Assembly: GCA_024704765.1 (NCBI GenBank)
Contig: JAKMXF010000066.1
Location: forward strand, 500,495 to 564,494
Length of the DNA: 64,000 bases
Direction: 5' to 3'
From: Oopsacas minuta
Taxonomy: Eukaryota > Animalia > Porifera
Position 1 is the first letter of the stretch, and every line of letters begins with the position of its first letter. Shown piece by piece: positions 16 to 12,953 of the stretch. A program made the translations under genes and the position numbers. Under the pieces are notes generated by a model. It saw only the letters and a list, made by a program, of their open reading frames with translations. It made no database searches and had not been told where the DNA came from.

Positions 16-2577
16 ATGAAATTCTCAGATACGAAAATTACCGCGGATAATTCATATATACAGGCAGATCAATCCGAAACAAAACCAATTTGTAGTGATA
101 TCCATATCCAATCGTCAGAGCATGTTATACAGGAAAATACACCTTTGTTGCTAATAGATACGTCAGTTTCAGAAATTACACAAGATAATCCAATTATCAA
201 CGCTGATGAACTAGAAATTCAAGAAACAATACAATCAATGGCAGTGATAGATGATCAACTTGTTAAAGCGACTGAATTACGAGATACATTCAAATCCTTG
301 GAAGAGATATTGAATTCTCCTCATATAGAAATAACACAAGCAAGAGATATACTGCTTCTCTACAGTAGTCTCAGCAAATTACATCTTTATGACGTCATCA
401 AACAGCATCTTTGCAAGTCAATCGATACAATTGAGATTCCAACAATAGCTCAGTATCTTGACTGTATTTCTAATTGGGAGTTGTGGACATTCCTTCCACT
501 GTCAGTATCCAGTCAGCTGTCTAATCAGCTGTTTAAGTTATCTCTTAATCTTGACACTATACATACACCGGATCCTGAACATTTTGATGAAAAAGCTCCG
601 AGTATTCAGGATTTGTGTATGAAAAGTGGAGTACCTTCATTTGATCAAAACATACTGAATTATTACAGATGTTATTTCTCTCATTTAATACTAAACTCTC
701 TTCTAAACGAGTCTATTGTAGAAGAAATGATTGAGAATTCTGATACTACATTGTGTATGTGGAGGATGGTTTATTGTCAAGAAGAAGAACGCCTGGATGA
801 TGATGCTACTGCTAATCCATGTGAAATTAAGAAAAAATGTAAGGCATGCTTCTCTCCAACAAGCAAGATTATGACAGATAAATTCACATTAGGTTCTTAT
901 GTCAAAATCAGCTTTGTAGCTAGATCTACATCTTCTAACTCGAGTATGCCAATTGCACTAGGCTACATATCAACAGTATCAAATATTCTAGGTCGTATTA
1001 CAGTAGAAATATTGGATCCTGTCCCTGATTGCCTAAAGAGAGCAGGTCGACTTGAGGTAGGCATATGGACTCTCACCTTGCTAGACAACATTACTACATT
1101 CAAGAATTGTACCAAAGCTCTACATAGCTTACACGAGAGTAAGATTATTTCTATATTAATACATCCTAAAGGGTTCCCTCCTCTTCTAGAGATAGCACAA
1201 GAACACAATTTAGACTATACATCTAAACAATCTCTACCTCCAGAAGAGATAGAAAATGTTTCGCATCCTTATGATGTATTCCCTAACTGTCAGGGTTGTA
1301 ATAATAGGATTAGCTTCAATGAGAGACAGGAAAATGCCATCATCTCCGCTCTCGGAGACTCCCTTACTCTGATACAGGGTCTGCCTGGTACTGGTAAGAC
1401 TGTAGTAGCAGCAGAGATTGTACATCAGTTACGTCATCTGATTAGACTTAAAGATAGATGTGATACTGCTAAAATGCTAGTTACAGGTGTTACTAATATC
1501 ACTGTGGATAATCTCACATATAAACTGTTGGATTTAGGGATGCTAGTGTTGCGTATTGGGGAGACTACCAAAGACCTACGTGAATACTCCTTAGAATATC
1601 AGCTGCAAATGAAAGGGATAGAACTACAAGAAAATGGAGAGTTTAAAGAAGAAGAAATAATCAATAAAATATTAAAATCAGCTGATATAATCGCTACAAC
1701 ATGTTCAAGAACAGGAGATAATATTCTGAAGAATATAACATTCCCTTATATACTAATCGACGATGCTACTCAAGTGATAGAACCTATATCATTAATTCCT
1801 ATAGTCAAATCTTGTGAGAGGCTTATTCTCATAGGAGACCCACAACAACTAGTACCCAAGTTACCATATGAACCAGAGGGTGTGATTCCTCTAAATGCAC
1901 TTCGTGTTACTCTATTCCACAGGTTACATGCTCAAATGGAGCCTCTTTCGCTAGTTGAACAGTATCGTATGCATCCTGCTATAGCTGAATTTCCTTCTAG
2001 ATTATTCTATTCTGGGAGATTGAGAACAGCAGTCAGCTGTTTGAATAGAACACCGCCTAATGTTAGGTTCCTCACTAAAGACAGACCTGTTACATTCTGT
2101 AATGTAGAATCAAGAGAAGAGGAAGCTGGAAGTTCTTGGAAGAATACAGGAGAAGCTAATAAAGTTGTAGAGATTATTAAAGAACTGATAGCTACTACAG
2201 AATACAAAGTATCTGATATTGGAGTAATTACACTGTATGTCGGACAAGTTAAATGCATTAAAGATACGCTAGGTAGGATACAAGTAGATGTAGATACTAT
2301 AGACAGCTATAGAGGCAGGGAGAAGGAAGTAATTGTATTCAGCACTGTTCGGAACACAAAACACGGAGATATTAGTCTTATAGAAGATTTAAATACAATA
2401 AATGTGTTGTTAACAAGAGGAAGGCGAGCAATAATCGGAGTTGGTAACCCTATGACTCTGTCTAGATCTCATATCTGGAATGAATGGTACTATTTCTATT
2501 TTGAAGGAGACAATGAAGACGATAAACCGCCGCATGATGACGTCACTGAGGCTTCAGATTGGGCATGGGATGCTTGA
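16..2577 (+). CDS. UPF1/NAM7-like superfamily 1B helicase (intronless, no UPF1 CH domain seen)
   Basis: 853-aa ORF with SF1B motifs in order: GLPGTGKT, TNITVDNL, LIDDATQ, LIGDPQQL, QYRMHP, DTIDSYRGREK, NVLLTRGRR. The acidic N-terminal half is unrecognised. Confidence 0.85.
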   Translation: MKFSDTKITADNSYIQADQSETKPICSDIHIQSSEHVIQENTPLLLIDTSVSEITQDNPIINADELEIQETIQSMAVIDDQLVKATELRDTFKSLEEILNSPHIEITQARDILLLYSSLSKLHLYDVIKQHLCKSIDTIEIPTIAQYLDCISNWELWTFLPLSVSSQLSNQLFKLSLNLDTIHTPDPEHFDEKAPSIQDLCMKSGVPSFDQNILNYYRCYFSHLILNSLLNESIVEEMIENSDTTLCMWRMVYCQEEERLDDDATANPCEIKKKCKACFSPTSKIMTDKFTLGSYVKISFVARSTSSNSSMPIALGYISTVSNILGRITVEILDPVPDCLKRAGRLEVGIWTLTLLDNITTFKNCTKALHSLHESKIISILIHPKGFPPLLEIAQEHNLDYTSKQSLPPEEIENVSHPYDVFPNCQGCNNRISFNERQENAIISALGDSLTLIQGLPGTGKTVVAAEIVHQLRHLIRLKDRCDTAKMLVTGVTNITVDNLTYKLLDLGMLVLRIGETTKDLREYSLEYQLQMKGIELQENGEFKEEEIINKILKSADIIATTCSRTGDNILKNITFPYILIDDATQVIEPISLIPIVKSCERLILIGDPQQLVPKLPYEPEGVIPLNALRVTLFHRLHAQMEPLSLVEQYRMHPAIAEFPSRLFYSGRLRTAVSCLNRTPPNVRFLTKDRPVTFCNVESREEEAGSSWKNTGEANKVVEIIKELIATTEYKVSDIGVITLYVGQVKCIKDTLGRIQVDVDTIDSYRGREKEVIVFSTVRNTKHGDISLIEDLNTINVLLTRGRRAIIGVGNPMTLSRSHIWNEWYYFYFEGDNEDDKPPHDDVTEASDWAWDA

Positions 2578-2808
2578 AAGGTTAATTTATTGATACCATG
2601 TATAAATATTTTAATATTTATTAGGTTTGAAAAGTACTTTTTAAATGACAAATAGCTACAGAATTCCATAATAATAATATTCAATTAGTAATTGAATAAA
2701 TCTTATTTATATTTTCTTATAAATAGTCACAGATATTATATGCTAAATAATTATACAAATATTTACAAATTGGGGGAGTTTGTAATCCAAATTAGACAAT
2801 TATGAGAG

Positions 2809-3933
2809 CTACATTTGTTCTTCCTTCGCCATTCCCTTCATGAATGGCTCTCTGTTTTTATTTTGAAATTTCCTGACCATTTCATTGACAATTCCATCCT
2901 GACTTTCTGTGAAGTCTGATCTCGTTCTCATCTTTGGATTTTTAATCACGGTTTGTTGTCGCATGTAACAAGGAATATGTTGTAAAGAAGAGGCAATATC
3001 TTTGCTTTCATTTTCCATCAATAGGATATCCCTTTCTCTTGGATCACAGAATTTTATCGAGGACATATTGACATAATTATGATTCATTGCGCTGTTACCC
3101 ATGATAGGAGAATGTGGTGCACTCCTACTAAGCCGTATATTATCTGCTGCTGTATATGAGCTAGGCATATTCAGCCTGCAATATTCATTGGAGTCAAAAG
3201 CAATTCTATAATCAATATCATTATCCGTTGCCTGATGTTCGTTATCATAAGTATATGCTCTATCCAGTTTATTTAATCTCCTAGAAGTGAATTGTCCAGT
3301 AGATGGGCTACTTGTATTGATCTTGGTATTATATTGGTGTATACGTTCATAATCTTGTGATTGTGAATAGAAATTCGTGCTTCGTGACTTTTTAAGTTTG
3401 CCAGGTTCGAAATCAAAAGCTTGTTCACATAATGGAGTTACATCTGTGTCGATATAGTTCATAGAACTAGCTACACTCGGATTTGCATTTGTCAAGAGGT
3501 CTAAGTAGAAAGGCATAGTTCTCTCTGTTTGGTTACTAGTAACACAAATCTCCTCTGAATTCTGGATACACCACGTCATGTTTGCAATTTTACTGTGTTT
3601 ATTGATCTCGAATAATTTTACTGTTCTATCCCAGTGTATTTCAATGATAGGTTTTCTTGCTTGATTATACTGAATCTCAGATTCTATATTAGCCATTAAT
3701 CTTTTCTTCGAGGAATACAAAGAGCTGTACTCTGATATTTCCTGATCCACATCGTGTTTGACCTTCTGTAATTTCGCGATATCTCTTTTCCACTCCCTCT
3801 CTAATTTATCTATTTCATCGTATAATTGGTTTTGTATATTATTTAGAAGTCTACTAAACTCGATAAACTTATTCTTTACTACATCTCTAGCATTGTCAAA
3901 AGGACAATACTCTGAATCTGTTCTATACTGCAT
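2809..3933 (-). CDS. Uncharacterised protein with N-terminal coiled coil and low-complexity Ser/Thr-rich C-terminus
   Basis: 374-aa ATG-initiated ORF; heptad-like segment LQKVKHDVDQEISEY...; no other recognisable domain. Confidence 0.6.
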   Translation of the reverse strand: MQYRTDSEYCPFDNARDVVKNKFIEFSRLLNNIQNQLYDEIDKLEREWKRDIAKLQKVKHDVDQEISEYSSLYSSKKRLMANIESEIQYNQARKPIIEIHWDRTVKLFEINKHSKIANMTWCIQNSEEICVTSNQTERTMPFYLDLLTNANPSVASSMNYIDTDVTPLCEQAFDFEPGKLKKSRSTNFYSQSQDYERIHQYNTKINTSSPSTGQFTSRRLNKLDRAYTYDNEHQATDNDIDYRIAFDSNEYCRLNMPSSYTAADNIRLSRSAPHSPIMGNSAMNHNYVNMSSIKFCDPRERDILLMENESKDIASSLQHIPCYMRQQTVIKNPKMRTRSDFTESQDGIVNEMVRKFQNKNREPFMKGMAKEEQM

Positions 3934-5085
3934 TGAATCTGTTGATATTTCATTTTATACTTTATAAACGAGCATATATATATATCACCAAATACACGAG
4001 CACGATGTCTCCAATTACATATCTTATCTTGATATATCAGGAATTGCTCTACAAATAGGACTTTAGGAGAAATATTACTAAATATTTGTAAGTACAAAAA
4101 ATATCTAATTTTGAAATCTGCTAGCACTACGTATGATATTTCAACACAATCATTTTTACTATATACTTTGTTATATTCATTTATTAGAGGACATATCTTG
4201 TCCGTGATCAGTATTAGTTATATACTCTTGGATCTACCGTGTTAACACAACTGTAGATTCTGCATCAGTTTAATCAACTGTTCTTTACGACACATAACTT
4301 CACCCTCTCTTCTTAACTACATCTAATCTCTACTATATTTATTTTGTGGTAAGTTTAACGATACAATCCAGAGGTTTCATACTTCAGTAGGTTAATTATT
4401 GCAATATTATCCTTGAAGAGGTTACTTTATGCTTTCTGCATTAATAATCATTATCTTTGCATTTCTATTTCAAATATTGATATATGTGTATAGTAGTTCT
4501 AAATATATACCAGTTCTAAATATATACCAGTTCTATTTTGGTATATATTGGTGTATTCAATGTACTTAAGTTACAAGTAGTGGAACCATTAGTCCTGCGT
4601 GAATCTTTACATAACTATTTACTAGTAGGCTAATTAATCAACTCAGAGTAGTGACTAACTATCCATTTTACCAGCAATTTGCAACCGTTTCATCCGTGGA
4701 CCAACAAGGGGTCATTTGCCCCCAGGTTTGGGATCGCTACATAATGCAATAATTCATGAGATTATTCGTTGTTCCACTTTCGTTTATCCAAATTTCTGAG
4801 TCTGTAAATAGTTCTGTGATGTATCATCCTGTTATGCAACGAATTCTCTAATATTATATGTACAACTGTCTCTACAAAAATATTTATAGACCTAATATTT
4901 ACACAAGTTGCTTATAATCATAAAAATTATTTTCCTACAGATATATTCGCTCAGTATGGCATTTTAAACCAATCAATGTTCCTTTTCAATTCAATGCCCA
5001 ATTATATTCAAATCGTGTTTATAACAAATTACTCAACTGATCACATCTCACACACAAGAGAAAAACTTTTACGCAAATACGCGAA

Positions 5086-7484: not shown

Positions 7485-9294
7485 TCAAACTACGTTTAGT
7501 TTGGTTACAATACACACTCTTACTGACTGATCAAACGAGGGACACACGAACAATCCTTCCTATAGAATACAGAATAGAAATGCAAAATAATTTTGTTTGT
7601 AGCACAACTTATAAATGTTGTTTACCTTGTCATTATTCCAGTCCAATGTCGATATAGGTTGATCTGACAGATGTATATTCTGTAGAGCAGTCACACTACC
7701 CATTACACCTTCCTCTGTTTCATCCTCGTTCTTCTTAAACCGTTTAGGTGGATAGTTGCTACAATTTGTAATAATTCATTAGGTATTTAAGAGAGTGCTA
7801 TCAATTAACTCACTATTTCCAAATGTTAACTGTCCCATTTCCGCCAGTGGTAGCGAATATATCTCTGTTCTGAGGGAGATGTTTCACGCTCCAGATTGTA
7901 GACTCATGTGCCTAGATTAAATTGCTCATAATCACTGTAAAATTTTACTGCAAAATAACTGTACAATCAACTTCCGTTATATCGAAGCTTAGTGGACCGC
8001 GATAAATACTTCGATATATCCGTGTTAGATATAACGTGAGTTAACTGTATTTCCTTACCTTTTCAACAAGAGATGCGAATCCTTTGGCCTCGTTAAAAGT
8101 GCGTAAATCATAAATATGATATTTCCCCTCTAGTGTGACTGCTACTAACTTATTCTTAATAATATCTGTTCTATCGAATTGTAAGCCACAAACCTAATTC
8201 ATTAAATGAAATAAAATCAGCTATTTCTAAACGGAAATTTGTTACGTCACTCACTCCATTTTTAAGATTATTCTCCCAGAATAAACTCAAATTTCTCAAA
8301 TCAAACATCTTAACATCTCCGTTATCATATCCAGAACACACAAACCTTTCTTCATTGTTATGAGAATTCCCTACGAACATTTGAATTTAGTTTCATGAAT
8401 ACATAGTAATTATAATTATATTACCCATTGCAACAGCCCAGCAATCTCTTCTAGCCTCTCCTTTAGCAGGTTCCATGCAAGCTACCGGGTTATTCTTCTG
8501 TCTTACGTCCCACACTTTCACTGATCCTATAAACACACGTTATTAACACAGTCTATTTCCATTATATCGAACACGGATATATGGAAATACCCGCTTATAC
8601 CGAAGTCAAGTCTTAAATTGTACAAATATTATCCCAAACCTTCAAAGTAACATAATTTCATTGTTTATATCCCAATAATTATCGCGATCCCTTGAGCTTC
8701 GATGTAACGGGAGTTGACTGACACAACTGCAGTGTTTATATTGTAAGCTAATTGGTACTCAAAATTATTCTTGAAATCAACATAGGTAGTATTTATTTAT
8801 AACAAACCGTCTCTACTCCCAGTCACTATCTCAGGTGCTCCATTCCCTATTCCCACTCCACCACATCCATCAATAGCATTGATTATCCCTTCATGAGCTT
8901 TCACACTGTATACCGGATAATCTAACCTCTCTAGATCCCATGTAGCTAGTCTTCCATCAAAGTCTCCAGTAGCTAGATGTCTCTGGTGTAGAGAGCTAGC
9001 TCCAAATGTCCCGCACTTGAATGAAGATTTCTTCTCTGTCTAGAAATAATATAAAAACACGAATCGTGACGTAATTCACGCTTAATAAATACATTATTAT
9101 TGTATACTTACTTGTACAATTAATTTTAACTCTCCCTTATTGACTTCATATATTTGAATTGCTCCCGTGCCTCGGGGATGAGAGCCCAATACAACACACT
9201 TAGCACTTGATGGTATCCATTTGGTATCGTAGACAGTGAAGTTTAGACTCTTGTGGATGTGTACTATTATTTGCGGCTTTTCCCAGGTGGACAT
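7485..9294 (-). CDS. WDR92: WD repeat protein 92 / dynein axonemal assembly factor 10, 8 exons
   Basis: [28 protein letters not shown] start; [11 protein letters not shown]; [21 protein letters not shown]; RDCWAV; [14 protein letters not shown]; C-terminal [15 protein letters not shown]; all exon phases join with GT-AG introns. Confidence 0.92.
7964..8047. mobile_element. MITE family A, internally deleted copy
   Basis: CAATCAACTTCCGTTATATCGAAG ... GATATAACGTGAGTTAACTG with TA flanks; in WDR92 intron 7912-8058. Confidence 0.8.
8549..8720. mobile_element. MITE family A
   Basis: Degenerate TIRs plus shared internal motifs (ACACGGATAT, TACAAATAT, ATCGCGATCCCTTGAGCTTCGAT); in WDR92 intron 2. Confidence 0.8.
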
Positions 9295-9571
9295 TTTGTA
9301 GATTTTCAATTCAAATTGCAGTTTATTTCTACAATACTTGTGTAAATATATAATCAATTAAGGGAGACTTAGATCTTCCACGATTTATGAGATATTATTT
9401 GAATTGTTAAGATCGTGTAAACAATTAAATATGTATACACAGTCGTGGAAAACACCCAACAAACTGTATACCCCCAGAGATCTCTAGAATTATTGATAGT
9501 TCAAACTATACTAAGAAACAAAGATGCAATGGTTTGTAGGTTAAATATTGTCTGTCACATTTGAACTTAGC

Positions 9572-10336
9572 ATGGCAAGTTTAAAGAAAGTTCTTAATTA
9601 TTCTCAATTATTTGACGAATGGAGGCACAATTCAGATAGAGACATATTTGACTCGACTGTCACTCCAACTGATTCTCCTTCTTCTAATAATCCTTTCCGT
9701 GTCGGAATGAAACTAGAAGCTGTAGATAGAAAGTTTCCAGGTCTTTTCTGTGTAGCTTCCGTTATAAGAGTTATAGATGATGAATTGCTTATATTCTTCG
9801 ATGGATGGCCACATTATTATAACTATTGGTGTCACTTTAAAAGTCCAGAGGTTAGACCGATTCATAGTTGTGAAAATTCAAAATTATCCCTACAGATTCC
9901 TAATACAGGAGACAGAGCACGTGAATTGTGGAGAGATACAGGAGAAGGTCATGGATGGGATGTTTACCTACGTAACACCAGGGCTACTATATTACCAGAT
10001 GAAAAATTCTTTCCCCTTTACTTATCACAAACAAATGAAAATATGCTGAGCTTATTCGAGTTAACTGTACGTATCATTTTAGCAACTGATCAAATTAATA
10101 TTTATACTCTACCAGTTAAAATACAGGAACATTTAAAAGAGGCCATAATGTGCTGTATTTGTGGTACAAAGTTCTTGTTGGGATGGAGATGTGTACGTAT
10201 GTTTACCTGTCAGCGAATGCTCGATCCATCTGATAAAGCTTTTAATGAGCGAGCTAGAATTGTTTGCTCAGAAACTTGTGCAAATATTTTCACCAAAACT
10301 ATTCCACCAAATTCTGGTTCATGGAGGTGGGAGTAA
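9572..10336 (+). CDS. Single-MBT methyl-lysine reader fused to a BC-box/Cullin-box and Cys-rich C-terminal module
   Basis: FRVGMKLEAVD..FCVASV..FFDGWPHYYNYW..PEVRPI MBT core; then SLFELTVRII..LPVKIQEHL, MCCICG and CSETC. The ATG at 9572 is in frame with the track ORF (9548, TTG start). Confidence 0.8.
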   Translation: MASLKKVLNYSQLFDEWRHNSDRDIFDSTVTPTDSPSSNNPFRVGMKLEAVDRKFPGLFCVASVIRVIDDELLIFFDGWPHYYNYWCHFKSPEVRPIHSCENSKLSLQIPNTGDRARELWRDTGEGHGWDVYLRNTRATILPDEKFFPLYLSQTNENMLSLFELTVRIILATDQINIYTLPVKIQEHLKEAIMCCICGTKFLLGWRCVRMFTCQRMLDPSDKAFNERARIVCSETCANIFTKTIPPNSGSWRWE

Positions 10337-10784
10337 TTGATGTATGTATCTTTCTATAGTAACTTTTGAGTCTATCTTTTATAACTATTAATTATTTATA
10401 ATTATTATTTCGATATACATAGGCCTGCCCTTACGTTGGTAGGGTGAGTGATTCAGGAATGTCTTTAGATCTATTATAGATTTTAATTTTAGAGCTAGAG
10501 GCTAACTTTTTTCGATTATATTTGGCCTTGTATTTATTCGTCAAATCGTCCTTATTCCTGCTTGTAAATTCGAGTCAATTCGTATTTTTCTTACAATCTC
10601 GTTCTCCCGTAATGGATATGCTACGCTGAGCTGATATATATATATTCACGAGCTCGATTACAAATGCAGTCATGTCTTTAGTAATATCACACTAATAGCT
10701 AGACTATAAAAGTATAGGCCAAGCCTTACAATAGTATTATATTAACTAATTAATTCGAAATCTCTAAATTTTCAATTATTCGAC

Positions 10785-12953
10785 ATGGTAAAGACATGTC
10801 TACGAATATTTCTTATACTAATCCTGTTTAGTTGTTGTCGATCTTCTTTCATTCAATATAACGGGTTTCAGAATCTATTTTCTACCTCGCAACTTGAGAT
10901 TCCATCCAACAAAACAAAAGAATTTCTCGAAACTGCGGATTGCTCAGTTGTGAGTAGCTTAAACATTTCCATCCATAATTTGACAAAATGTTATTTTGTC
11001 CGTAATGCAGATGATTGTTCTATTGACGACGGATTCGTGAACTATCTCCAATTTCCTTACTGTGTCTTGCCCAACATTTATTGGTTGGCTATGGTAATCC
11101 TGTTTATTTGGTTAGGCTATCTTTTCATTTCGCTGGGAGCTGCAGCTGAAGAGTTCTTCTGTCCTAATCTGAATACAATTGCTAATACATTACGTCTTAG
11201 TCAGAATGTAGCTGGAGTAACATTTCTAGCATTTGGTAATGGAGCCCCTGATATATTCAGTGTTATTTCTGCAGTACGTGCTTCTCGTGATGGGGAAGCA
11301 GGTCTTGCCATGGGCGAGTTGTTCGGTGCAGGGATGTTCATAACAACAGTAATAGTCGGCGCTATTTCAATGATAAAACCATGTGAACTGCCTAAACGCC
11401 CGTTCCTCCGCGACTCAATCATCTATCTATTCTCTGTATACTGCACCTTTGTACTGCTTTGGTTCAATTTCATTGATATATACCAGTCAGCTGCTTTCAT
11501 ACTCGTGTATGTGGTCTACGTCATAATAGTAGTTGCAGGCAGAGAAGTTAGGATGTGGTATATTAGACGTCAGAAACGTAAGAAAAAGGCTGGACAGTTA
11601 GACATAAACTCTCCAAGTTTACATGTAAATGACGTCACAAATGAACCAACATCTGTACATAACGTAATAATAACTAAAGTAACAGATGATCAAGATAGTG
11701 AGGAGGTCAGTGTGAATAGGCTGACGTCACACACTAATAGTTACGGAGCTGTTAATGATAGCATAACAGAACCGTTACTGAAGGTAACAAGAGGTGCCCG
11801 CCGGGGTAATGATAGTGATAGAGAGGATAGCTTTCAAAGGAGCAAGAGTCCAATGCGGATGTTCCCCGGGGGCGGATTAAGACGTACACAATCTGGGGGG
11901 ATTGATATTAGTAGAACAGCTGGTGTAGCTTTCTTAGGGAAAGACGAGCAGGAAGATGAACGGAAGAGGAGAGCTGAAAATGCTATGCCTGATGAATCTC
12001 TGCCTGTCATTGGAAGAGGGCGGAAAGCGTCACGTCGAATTAGTGATTACATGACAGATTTCAGGCGAGATGACTTGTTATCCAGCTTCAAGGAATTCTT
12101 ATGGGCTATTTCGCCAGTGAATGAAGATTATAAGAAATTGAATTATTTTTGGAAAGTTTTCCAACTTATAAAATATCCTATTTGGTTACTTCTCACTATA
12201 ACGATACCAGTTGTAGACCTAGACGCTGAAAAGCAGAATTGGAAGAAATGGTTATTTGTACTGCAATCATTTCTATGGCCAACATTCTCATTACTAGCTA
12301 CACAGCTTAGACACATCTGGATTAGTGATACATTCCCTCTATGGGGGGTAACATTAATATTTGGATTCTTCTTAGCTATATTCGTGATTATGTCCAGTAA
12401 CTATCGCCAGCAGCCATTCTATCATATGTTATTCTCGTTTATTGGATTCGGTGTGAGTGTCATATGGATATACAGCTTGGCTAATGAGGTTGTTAATTTG
12501 TTACAAGCATTTGGTGTAGTGCTCTCGCTTACTAAGGCTATATTAGGATTGACCTTTCTCGCATGGGGTAATAGTGTAGGTGATTTCGTAGCTGATACAA
12601 CTCTGGCCAGACAGGGGTTCCCTAGAACAGGACTATCTGCTTGTTATGGTGGGCCTCTGCTAAATACTTTATTAGGAATTGGATTCGCATGGACTATAAA
12701 AGGCATAACTTCTGGAGTAACAACTTTCGAGTTGAAATTCTCTCCGTTAGAACTCGTCTCTGCAGCATTCCTTACATTCAATTTAGTTGTTACTCTAATC
12801 GTACTCACTTTAACGGGTTACAAACTCCACTGGGTATTCGGGATATATCTTTTGTTATACTATGTCGTGTTTCTGATTGTTGGAATTCTGCTAGAAGTTG
12901 GAGTTATTAATATTTGTCTACCCAACTTAACTCCTACAGATGGCAATTGCTGA
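10785..12953 (+). CDS. SLC8B1: Na+/Li+/Ca2+ exchanger NCLX (CCX family), intronless
   Basis: Signal peptide; FVNYLQFPYC; alpha-1 GVTFLAFGNGAPDIFS; alpha-2 GLTFLAWGNSVGD; ACYGGPLLNTLLGIG; long charged cytosolic loop. Confidence 0.9.
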   Translation: MVKTCLRIFLILILFSCCRSSFIQYNGFQNLFSTSQLEIPSNKTKEFLETADCSVVSSLNISIHNLTKCYFVRNADDCSIDDGFVNYLQFPYCVLPNIYWLAMVILFIWLGYLFISLGAAAEEFFCPNLNTIANTLRLSQNVAGVTFLAFGNGAPDIFSVISAVRASRDGEAGLAMGELFGAGMFITTVIVGAISMIKPCELPKRPFLRDSIIYLFSVYCTFVLLWFNFIDIYQSAAFILVYVVYVIIVVAGREVRMWYIRRQKRKKKAGQLDINSPSLHVNDVTNEPTSVHNVIITKVTDDQDSEEVSVNRLTSHTNSYGAVNDSITEPLLKVTRGARRGNDSDREDSFQRSKSPMRMFPGGGLRRTQSGGIDISRTAGVAFLGKDEQEDERKRRAENAMPDESLPVIGRGRKASRRISDYMTDFRRDDLLSSFKEFLWAISPVNEDYKKLNYFWKVFQLIKYPIWLLLTITIPVVDLDAEKQNWKKWLFVLQSFLWPTFSLLATQLRHIWISDTFPLWGVTLIFGFFLAIFVIMSSNYRQQPFYHMLFSFIGFGVSVIWIYSLANEVVNLLQAFGVVLSLTKAILGLTFLAWGNSVGDFVADTTLARQGFPRTGLSACYGGPLLNTLLGIGFAWTIKGITSGVTTFELKFSPLELVSAAFLTFNLVVTLIVLTLTGYKLHWVFGIYLLLYYVVFLIVGILLEVGVINICLPNLTPTDGNC

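Follow-up and report, generated by a model that had tools for sequence, protein, structure and literature searches.

Can the recognition of methylated lysine and the recruitment of a cullin-RING ubiquitin ligase be combined in a single short polypeptide? This question is raised by a small gene of the glass sponge Oopsacas minuta, located within a stretch of 64,000 nucleotides (the window; positions 500,495 to 564,494 of the forward strand of contig JAKMXF010000066.1, assembly GCA_024704765.1), which is AT-rich with a guanine-cytosine content of ~0.27-0.37. The original prediction held that the encoded protein fuses one MBT core, a reader of methyl-lysine, to a Cullin-recruiting module of the LRRC28/LRRC58 type. 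The gene, termed P0001, is genuine: it lacks introns, is transcribed and has been conserved among sponges. The chances appear evenly balanced that its product serves as a compact substrate receptor of an Elongin BC-CUL2/5 ligase, with the single MBT cage as the substrate domain. The gene and the features of its MBT half are the following:

9572-10336, plus strand: MBT-plus-tail gene P0001, 254 amino acids and a stop codon, without introns (open reading frame list and sequence; gene call in GCA_024704765.1)
9599-9706, plus strand: arm-like N-terminal segment, residues 10-45, with a helix at 10-17 (structural alignments, AlphaFold2)
9707-9904, plus strand: MBT beta-core, residues 46-111 (Pfam PF02820)
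9725-9727, 9797-9799, 9806-9808 and 9818-9820, plus strand: cage residues D52, F76, W79 and Y83, respectively (alignment to L3MBTL1 repeat 2)
9905-10018, plus strand: trailing MBT arm, residues 112-149, WDVYLRNTRATILPDEKFF (aligns to the arm ahead of L3MBTL1 repeat 3)

The Pfam model PF02820 matches the protein over a single stretch, residues 46-111 (E-value 9.7e-21; a score of 74.2 bits, the cut-off being 22; covering positions 1-66 of the 69 in the profile), and the pocket motifs quoted in the original prediction are all present, namely AVD (containing D52), CVA (60-62) and FDGW..YNYW (76-86). In a profile search of the Protein Data Bank (PDB) with the orthologue profile, repeat 2 of L3MBTL1 was the best match (97 bits), and D52, F76, W79 and Y83 fall on its cage positions, which we take to be D355, F379, W382 and Y386 of L3MBTL1. 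All four residues are invariant across P0001 and six orthologues (236-248 residues, 50-59% identity), which retain the features of both the MBT and the tail. Among the orthologues, mean pairwise identity declines from 0.71 for the MBT core to 0.51-0.54 for the tail and falls to 0.12 over the last twelve residues, making the core (31 of 66 columns invariant) the best-conserved part; combined with the invariant cage, this argues for a working pocket. In the AlphaFold2 (AF2) model, the predicted local distance difference test (pLDDT) score exceeds 90 from residue 11 and 95 over the core. The MBT fold of the model is recovered by Foldseek (E 5e-10) and by VIA (Z 15.3; root-mean-square deviation of 2.2 A to L3MBTL1/3), structural alignments give 36-40% identity to the L3MBTL1/3 repeats, and the matched PDB entries include complexes with H4K20me2 and H1.5K27me2. 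As judged from sequence and model, the MBT fold and its cage of one aspartate and three aromatic residues are intact, and the pocket would be expected to capture methyl-lysine.

In front of the core, the two-MBT proteins SCM and SCMH1 align structurally with the model from residues 14-15 onward, within the arm-like N-terminal segment. On the other side, the WDVYL..LP..FF stretch (129-147) was read by the original prediction as an arm following the core in place of a second repeat, and rightly so: it is regarded as a true MBT arm without a second core after it because the L3MBTL1 alignment continues through the arm ahead of repeat 3. Helices are modelled within this trailing arm at 113-120 and 129-136. 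The usual arrangement of two to four interlocked MBT repeats was not found, as Pfam recognises one stretch and the arm leads into the tail. The protein shares with L3MBTL1 repeat 2 the Asp plus Phe/Trp/Tyr cage and the following arm, whereas in L3MBTL1 this repeat forms part of a three-repeat propeller, and a SAM domain and a C2HC finger are also present.

The aligned sequences show in the tail a BC-box-like helix and a Cul2-box, together with four cysteines that never vary:

10019-10297, plus strand: LRRC69/LRRC58-type C-terminal module, residues 150-242 (tail hidden Markov model (HMM), hhalign, Atlas neighbours)
10049-10078, plus strand: BC-box-like helix SLFELTVRII, residues 160-169 (conservation; AF2 helix 161-171)
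10109-10135, plus strand: Cul2-box-like LPVKIQEHL, residues 180-188 (consensus match; AF2 helix 182-189)
10151-10162, plus strand: first putative zinc knuckle, C194-x2-C197 (both cysteines invariant in 30 sequences; predicted hairpin 192-201)
10265-10279, plus strand: second pair of putative zinc ligands, C232-S-x2-C236, where helix 234-242 begins (cysteines invariant in 30 sequences)

The tail motifs that had been quoted are likewise present, i.e., SLFELTVRII, a spacer given as nine residues, LPVKIQEHL, MCCICG (193-198) and CSETC..F (232-240). A profile of the tail alone, searched against 1.84 billion (1.84e9) protein representatives, returned 13 hits, nine of which (orthologue P0003 and eight others) carry an MBT directly upstream of the tail. 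One further hit (E 9.3e-4) is an LRR (leucine-rich repeat) protein, identified as lamprey LRRC69. The remaining three (P0016, P0018 and P0019) are low-complexity or cysteine-rich, matching in 6-8 short stretches each, and were set aside as spurious. Aligned profile to profile by hhalign, the 17 MBT-type and 14 LRRC69 tails gave a probability of 97.1% and an E-value of 7.2e-11 over 100 columns. By these profile comparisons, the tail of P0001 is homologous to the C-terminal module of LRRC69. The claim of an LRRC28/LRRC58-type tail therefore stands as far as a conserved module homologous to the C-terminus of an LRR protein is concerned, while the relative demonstrated by both the library search and hhalign is LRRC69. 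The shared ~100 residues comprise an [S/A/T]L-x-E-x3-R helix, a Pro-containing second helix, C-x2-C-G-x2-F-L-x2-W, LCSxxC and the four invariant cysteines; the module follows leucine-rich repeats in LRRC69 and the MBT repeat in P0001. In the 30-sequence alignment of both families, L161, C194, C197, C232 and C236 are invariant and R167, E163, F201, L202 and S233 nearly so. In an alignment of 26 tails of both types (MBT and LRRC69), the BC-box-like helix shows no variation at L161 and R167 and hardly any at E163.

The published consensus sequences are (S,T,P)Lxxx(C,S,A)xxx-phi for the BC-box and phi-P-x-x-phi-x-x-x-phi for the Cul2-box (PMC4878042). The strict BC-box form occurs in 11 of the 18 MBT-family units; orthologues P0002 and P0003 read SLFELCARAL and conform to it. 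P0001 conforms to the Cul2-box consensus 10 residues after the BC-box, as do 12 of the 18 family units at the aligned site, and LPPKVLKLL is carried there by orthologues. Since a loosened pair of BC-box and Cul2-box arises in 4.5% of shuffles of P0001, the motifs alone constitute weak evidence, and it is conservation and homology that give them weight.

Structural comparison points in the same direction. When residues 145-254 of the Atlas model served as the query, six of the ten closest clusters proved to be C-terminal portions of LRR proteins (template modelling (TM) score 0.52-0.57 by query), and clusters of LRRC69 and LRC58 are among these neighbours (TM 0.55 for LRC58). The link to LRRC58 thus consists of this neighbour at TM 0.55 together with published descriptions, and the link to LRRC69 of sequence homology. 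The corresponding LRRC58 segments, which we take to be TLLELAARTI ... LPGNLLRYL ... YLCSPEC, fit all published residue numbers. An AF2 model computed from the 30-sequence alignment, which includes relatives and LRRC69 tails, reached a pLDDT of 91.6 and a predicted TM score (pTM) of 0.86, with the MBT and the tail predicted as a single rigid body. The seven-orthologue alignment alone had yielded an unusable model (pLDDT 37.5). In the predicted tail, a strand (150-152) is followed by the helices 161-171 and 182-189 (both with pLDDT ~90 or more), the C194/C197 hairpin, strands 205-208 and 228-231 and helix 234-242, which sets the cysteine pairs in a treble-clef-like secondary structure.

A possible functional meaning of this arrangement is suggested by LRRC58, a CRL2/CRL5 receptor for the cysteine dioxygenase CDO1, whose boxes and zinc loop have been established by experiment. 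In LRRC58, nine LRRs precede a BC-box, a CUL2-box of canonical form and a loop binding zinc, which are arranged around a two-stranded sheet, and the protein binds Elongin BC with CUL2 or CUL5 (10.1101/2025.09.23.678073; PMC13156300; PMC12589099). The substitutions A267D, L282D and L290D, or deletion of residues 256-291, abolish its function or its binding of EloBC/CUL5 (10.1101/2025.09.23.678073; PMC13156300; PMC12589099). The order of elements in LRRC58, for which a cryo-electron microscopy structure is available (9T7V), is strand, BC-box, CUL2-box, Cys-held zinc loop, second strand and C-terminal end (PMC13156300). The predicted P0001 tail has the same order, with a BC-box-like helix and a putative zinc loop. 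Furthermore, the hydrophobic residues of the Cul-box stand eight apart in both proteins (L282/L290 in LRRC58, L180/L188 in P0001). Nevertheless, the substrate domain is an LRR in one and an MBT in the other, and the cysteine-sensing residues and C-terminal -VLLG motif of LRRC58 have no counterpart in P0001. No LRR was detected in P0001 by Pfam, the MBT standing in its place; hence the protein is not classed as a member of the LRRC58/LRRC69 family, with which it shares only the cassette.

These observations suggest a receptor in which the LRRC69/LRRC58-type cullin-docking cassette has been kept and the LRR substrate domain has been replaced by a single MBT repeat. The BC-box helix would bind Elongin C, LPVKIQEHL would touch the cullin, and a zinc ion coordinated by the four cysteines may stabilise the cassette, as in LRRC58. 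The MBT pocket would capture mono- or di-methyl-lysine of a substrate or histone tail, and ubiquitylation of the bound or a neighbouring protein would follow. A more specific formulation, to which we give somewhat less than an even chance, is that of a one-chain methyl-degron receptor of sponges, whose MBT reads mono-/di-methyl-lysine and forms one rigid unit with a zinc-braced BC-box/Cul2-box cassette. On this reading the cassette is a mobile module, being attached to LRR domains (LRRC69, LRRC58) elsewhere in animals.

In vertebrates, the L3MBTL3-DCAF5 route employs a reader with triple MBT repeats and a separate receptor protein, and its cullin is CUL4. The proposed parallel lies in the coupling of an MBT methyl-lysine pocket to a cullin-RING ligase; in P0001, by contrast, one MBT repeat and the predicted Elongin BC-cullin docking cassette occupy the same chain. 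A closer precedent for the one-chain principle is provided by WSB1/WSB2, which combine a WD40 propeller with a SOCS box and are reported to act on lysine-methylated RelA (PMC11109945). They join methyl-lysine recognition to their own Elongin BC/cullin box in one polypeptide, the proposed counterparts in P0001 being an MBT cage and an LRRC69/58-type cassette.

Several findings weigh against the receptor proposal. No Pfam model, the SOCS box included, matched the tail of P0001, the 17 family tails or the 14 LRRC69 tails at E-values up to 1-5. T165 of P0001 occupies the C/S/A position, so that the strict BC-box consensus is missed there, and the chance rate of the loosened motif pair has been given above. 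LRRC69 itself has a YP-type box that fails the strict Cul2-box, in addition to a longer linker; a link between LRRC69 and Elongin BC or a cullin was absent from the literature searched, where no functional study of LRRC69 was found either. In the MBT half, the position of the gating Asn358 of L3MBTL1 is occupied by Phe55. Isolated MBT repeats are moreover atypical, making the ligand specificity uncertain.

Other searches added little on the tail. PDB searches with tail sequences and profiles matched neither LRRC58, which was out of reach in the copies used, nor any SOCS- or VHL-box protein, and the same was true of a search with the BC-/Cul-box stretch; weak PDB matches to the Pelle death domain, CLIC2 and the flagellar docking proteins DC6 and TbDC13 were rejected as chance. 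Only MBT and Tudor matches, uninformative on the tail, came from whole-model searches (Foldseek against a PDB copy older than the LRRC58 structure paper, wide VIA-align, Atlas). Word-based searches with the LRRC69 tail and the P0015 tail recovered close relatives only, and Atlas feature searches returned nothing. Scanning the six-frame translation with an HMM revealed the tail nowhere else in the window.

The distribution of the architecture appears to be confined to sponges, a range that rests on Oopsacas and Oscarella: the only taxon-labelled MBT-plus-tail relative, annotated as "uncharacterized protein", belongs to the homoscleromorph sponge Oscarella lobularis, and the other relatives come from ENA and Logan assemblies. 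Two of the latter, P0009 (752 residues) and P0010 (494 residues), contain two tandem MBT-plus-tail units each. The first unit of P0009 lacks the cage Asp, the aromatics and the Cul-box Pro, and neither unit of P0010 fits the Cul2-box. One assembly encodes both the orthologue P0005 (236 residues) and the paralogue P0014 (329 residues). Longer members (P0009, P0011-P0015 and P0017; L004 5001-5990) end in a conserved aromatic motif, FxYPRxFxVP (e.g., FFVYPRFFYVP), which is missing from P0001 and the other glass-sponge orthologues of 236-254 residues. The original prediction knew of no characterised protein with this architecture, and none came to light: the combination of MBT and tail was found in no Atlas cluster of at least 50 members, and the literature searched held no paper joining an MBT with a BC, SOCS or VHL box. 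LRRC69 proteins of Lottia, sea urchin, lamprey and other vertebrates (P0020-P0038) show a conserved BC-box-like helix and a four-Cys tail that Pfam does not model. LRRC69 may itself be an unrecognised cullin-RING receptor.

The same features can be read in other ways. The protein could be a ligase or adaptor tethered to chromatin, whose MBT docks on methylated histones (e.g., H4K20me1/2) and whose target is a neighbouring histone or chromatin protein, possibly mono-ubiquitylated without degradation. The evidence from the tail is identical for this version and for the substrate receptor, and the closest MBT, repeat 2 of L3MBTL1, is a reader of lower histone-lysine methylation states. However, histone and non-histone methyl-lysine targets are not separated by the sequence, vertebrate L3MBTL3 reads methylated non-histone proteins for degradation, and neither a nuclear localisation signal nor a DNA-binding element was identified in P0001. 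Even with a precedent in the BC-box protein BAF250, reported to mono-ubiquitylate H2B (PMC4878042), a chromatin-tethered role is considered unlikely. A decoy or regulatory role is much less probable still: the protein would bind Elongin BC while its MBT pocket is non-functional or filled in cis, and would either titrate Elongin BC or be controlled by its own turnover. Some plausibility is given to it by P0009 and P0010, which contain units with a decayed MBT cage or Cul-box, and by the regulation of LRRC58 through auto-ubiquitylation via the same boxes (10.1101/2025.09.23.678073). The invariance of the cage in P0001 and its six orthologues, in which the MBT core is the best-conserved part (71%, 31 of 66 columns), argues against this.

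A ligase need not be involved at all if the protein is a Polycomb-style reader, in which a helical linker and a diverged FCS/treble-clef finger (cf. L3MBTL2, MBTD1 and Polyhomeotic) would serve nucleic-acid or protein contacts and the resemblance to the boxes would be incidental. The C-x2-C ... (V/L)CSxxCA pattern does recall the signature of the FCS fingers that stand alongside MBT repeats in Polycomb-group proteins, zf-FCS was the most frequent weak Pfam hit among family tails, and zf-FCS_1 or zf-C2HC is common in the Atlas clusters formed by MBT proteins. The 4.5% chance rate of the motif pair and the missing SOCS-box match also favour such a reader. Nevertheless, FCS models (PF06467/PF21319) did not hit the tail of P0001 and hit only two of the 17 family tails, the best at an E-value of 0.03, far under the Pfam threshold. 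FCS fingers have no preceding BC-box helix, and their cysteine pairs lie much closer together (spaced by ~15 residues) than in P0001, where 34 residues separate them. The significant homology (E 7e-11) extends over the entire LRRC69 tail, with the BC-box helix, and to no FCS protein; in that helix, Leu and Arg vary as little as the putative zinc ligands do in both architectures. A Polycomb-style reader is rated improbable, to about the same degree as the chromatin-tethered ligase, and the substrate receptor of an Elongin BC-CUL2/5 ligase is retained as the preferred interpretation.

The reality of the gene itself is well documented. The reads over the locus belong to four runs (X1-X4) of one study and one sample, X1-X3 being DNA-like. 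X4, though without an RNA label, is taken to be cDNA-like (complementary DNA) because the CT..AC joints of a neighbouring WD40 gene were seen in this run only. X4 contigs, which carry neither strand nor true transcript ends, span 9576-10224 and 10195-10571 across P0001 without joints. Since these cDNA-like contigs cross the gene without a joint, P0001 is inferred to be transcribed and unspliced. The X4 depth drops sharply in intergenic stretches. The reading frame starts with the ATG at 9572, a methionine aligned with the starting Met of the orthologues, and the stop codon occupies 10334-10336. An AG dinucleotide is found one base upstream of the start codon (window 9569-9576), and the X4 contig over P0001 fits from 9576 onward, preceded by two unmatched letters. 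Beyond the stop codon, one further feature can be assigned:

10337-10571, plus strand: probable 3' untranslated region of P0001 (the X4 contig extends to 10571; end approximate)

The X4 depth is down to 7.5 in the bin 10560-10743. P0001 is flanked on one side by a spliced minus-strand WD40-repeat gene (window 7800-9357) and on the other by a gene for an Na/Ca exchanger (10785-12953). The WD40-repeat gene has five short introns of 54-281 nucleotides; the X4 joints that remove them have CT..AC borders, which read GT..AG in minus-strand orientation, and lie at 7910/8058, 8191/8253, 8369/8424, 8525/8807 and 9039/9112. Within its 281-nucleotide intron (8526-8806), the segment 8536-8719 looks like a high-copy repeat, with X1-X3 word depths of ~2,800-4,900 against ~75-190 on the flanks and with many contigs that end or branch. 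The exchanger (PF01699; 722 residues, plus strand), directly downstream of P0001, is likewise intronless. Two of the orthologue loci examined, in the related assemblies L001 and L002, retain this downstream gene. At position 10855, runs X1 and X2 show G instead of A.

What is known of methylation-dependent degradation comes mostly from the two-protein route of vertebrates, L3MBTL3 and CRL4-DCAF5, and from WSB1/2. As the one-polypeptide principle is already represented by WSB1/2 acting on methylated RelA (PMC11109945), only the MBT version of it would be new. If the tail does not bind Elongin BC, the result is a modest one: single-MBT proteins that form a novel family in sponges and carry a putative zinc domain for which no model exists. 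If the receptor proposal is true, P0001 would represent the simplest conceivable methyl-degron receptor, in which a well-understood cage is fused to a cullin-docking cassette within 254 residues. Such a natural minimal "methyl-lysine to ubiquitin" device would offer a small and tractable model for the structure and biochemistry of methyl-degrons. It would also mark the LRRC58/LRRC69-type cassette as a transferable module instead of an appendage of LRR proteins, and provide the first functional hint for LRRC69. Since the family is apparently found in sponges only, it bears on the link between chromatin and ubiquitin signalling in early-branching animals, in which methylation-dependent proteolysis would already have been wired directly to Elongin BC cullins.

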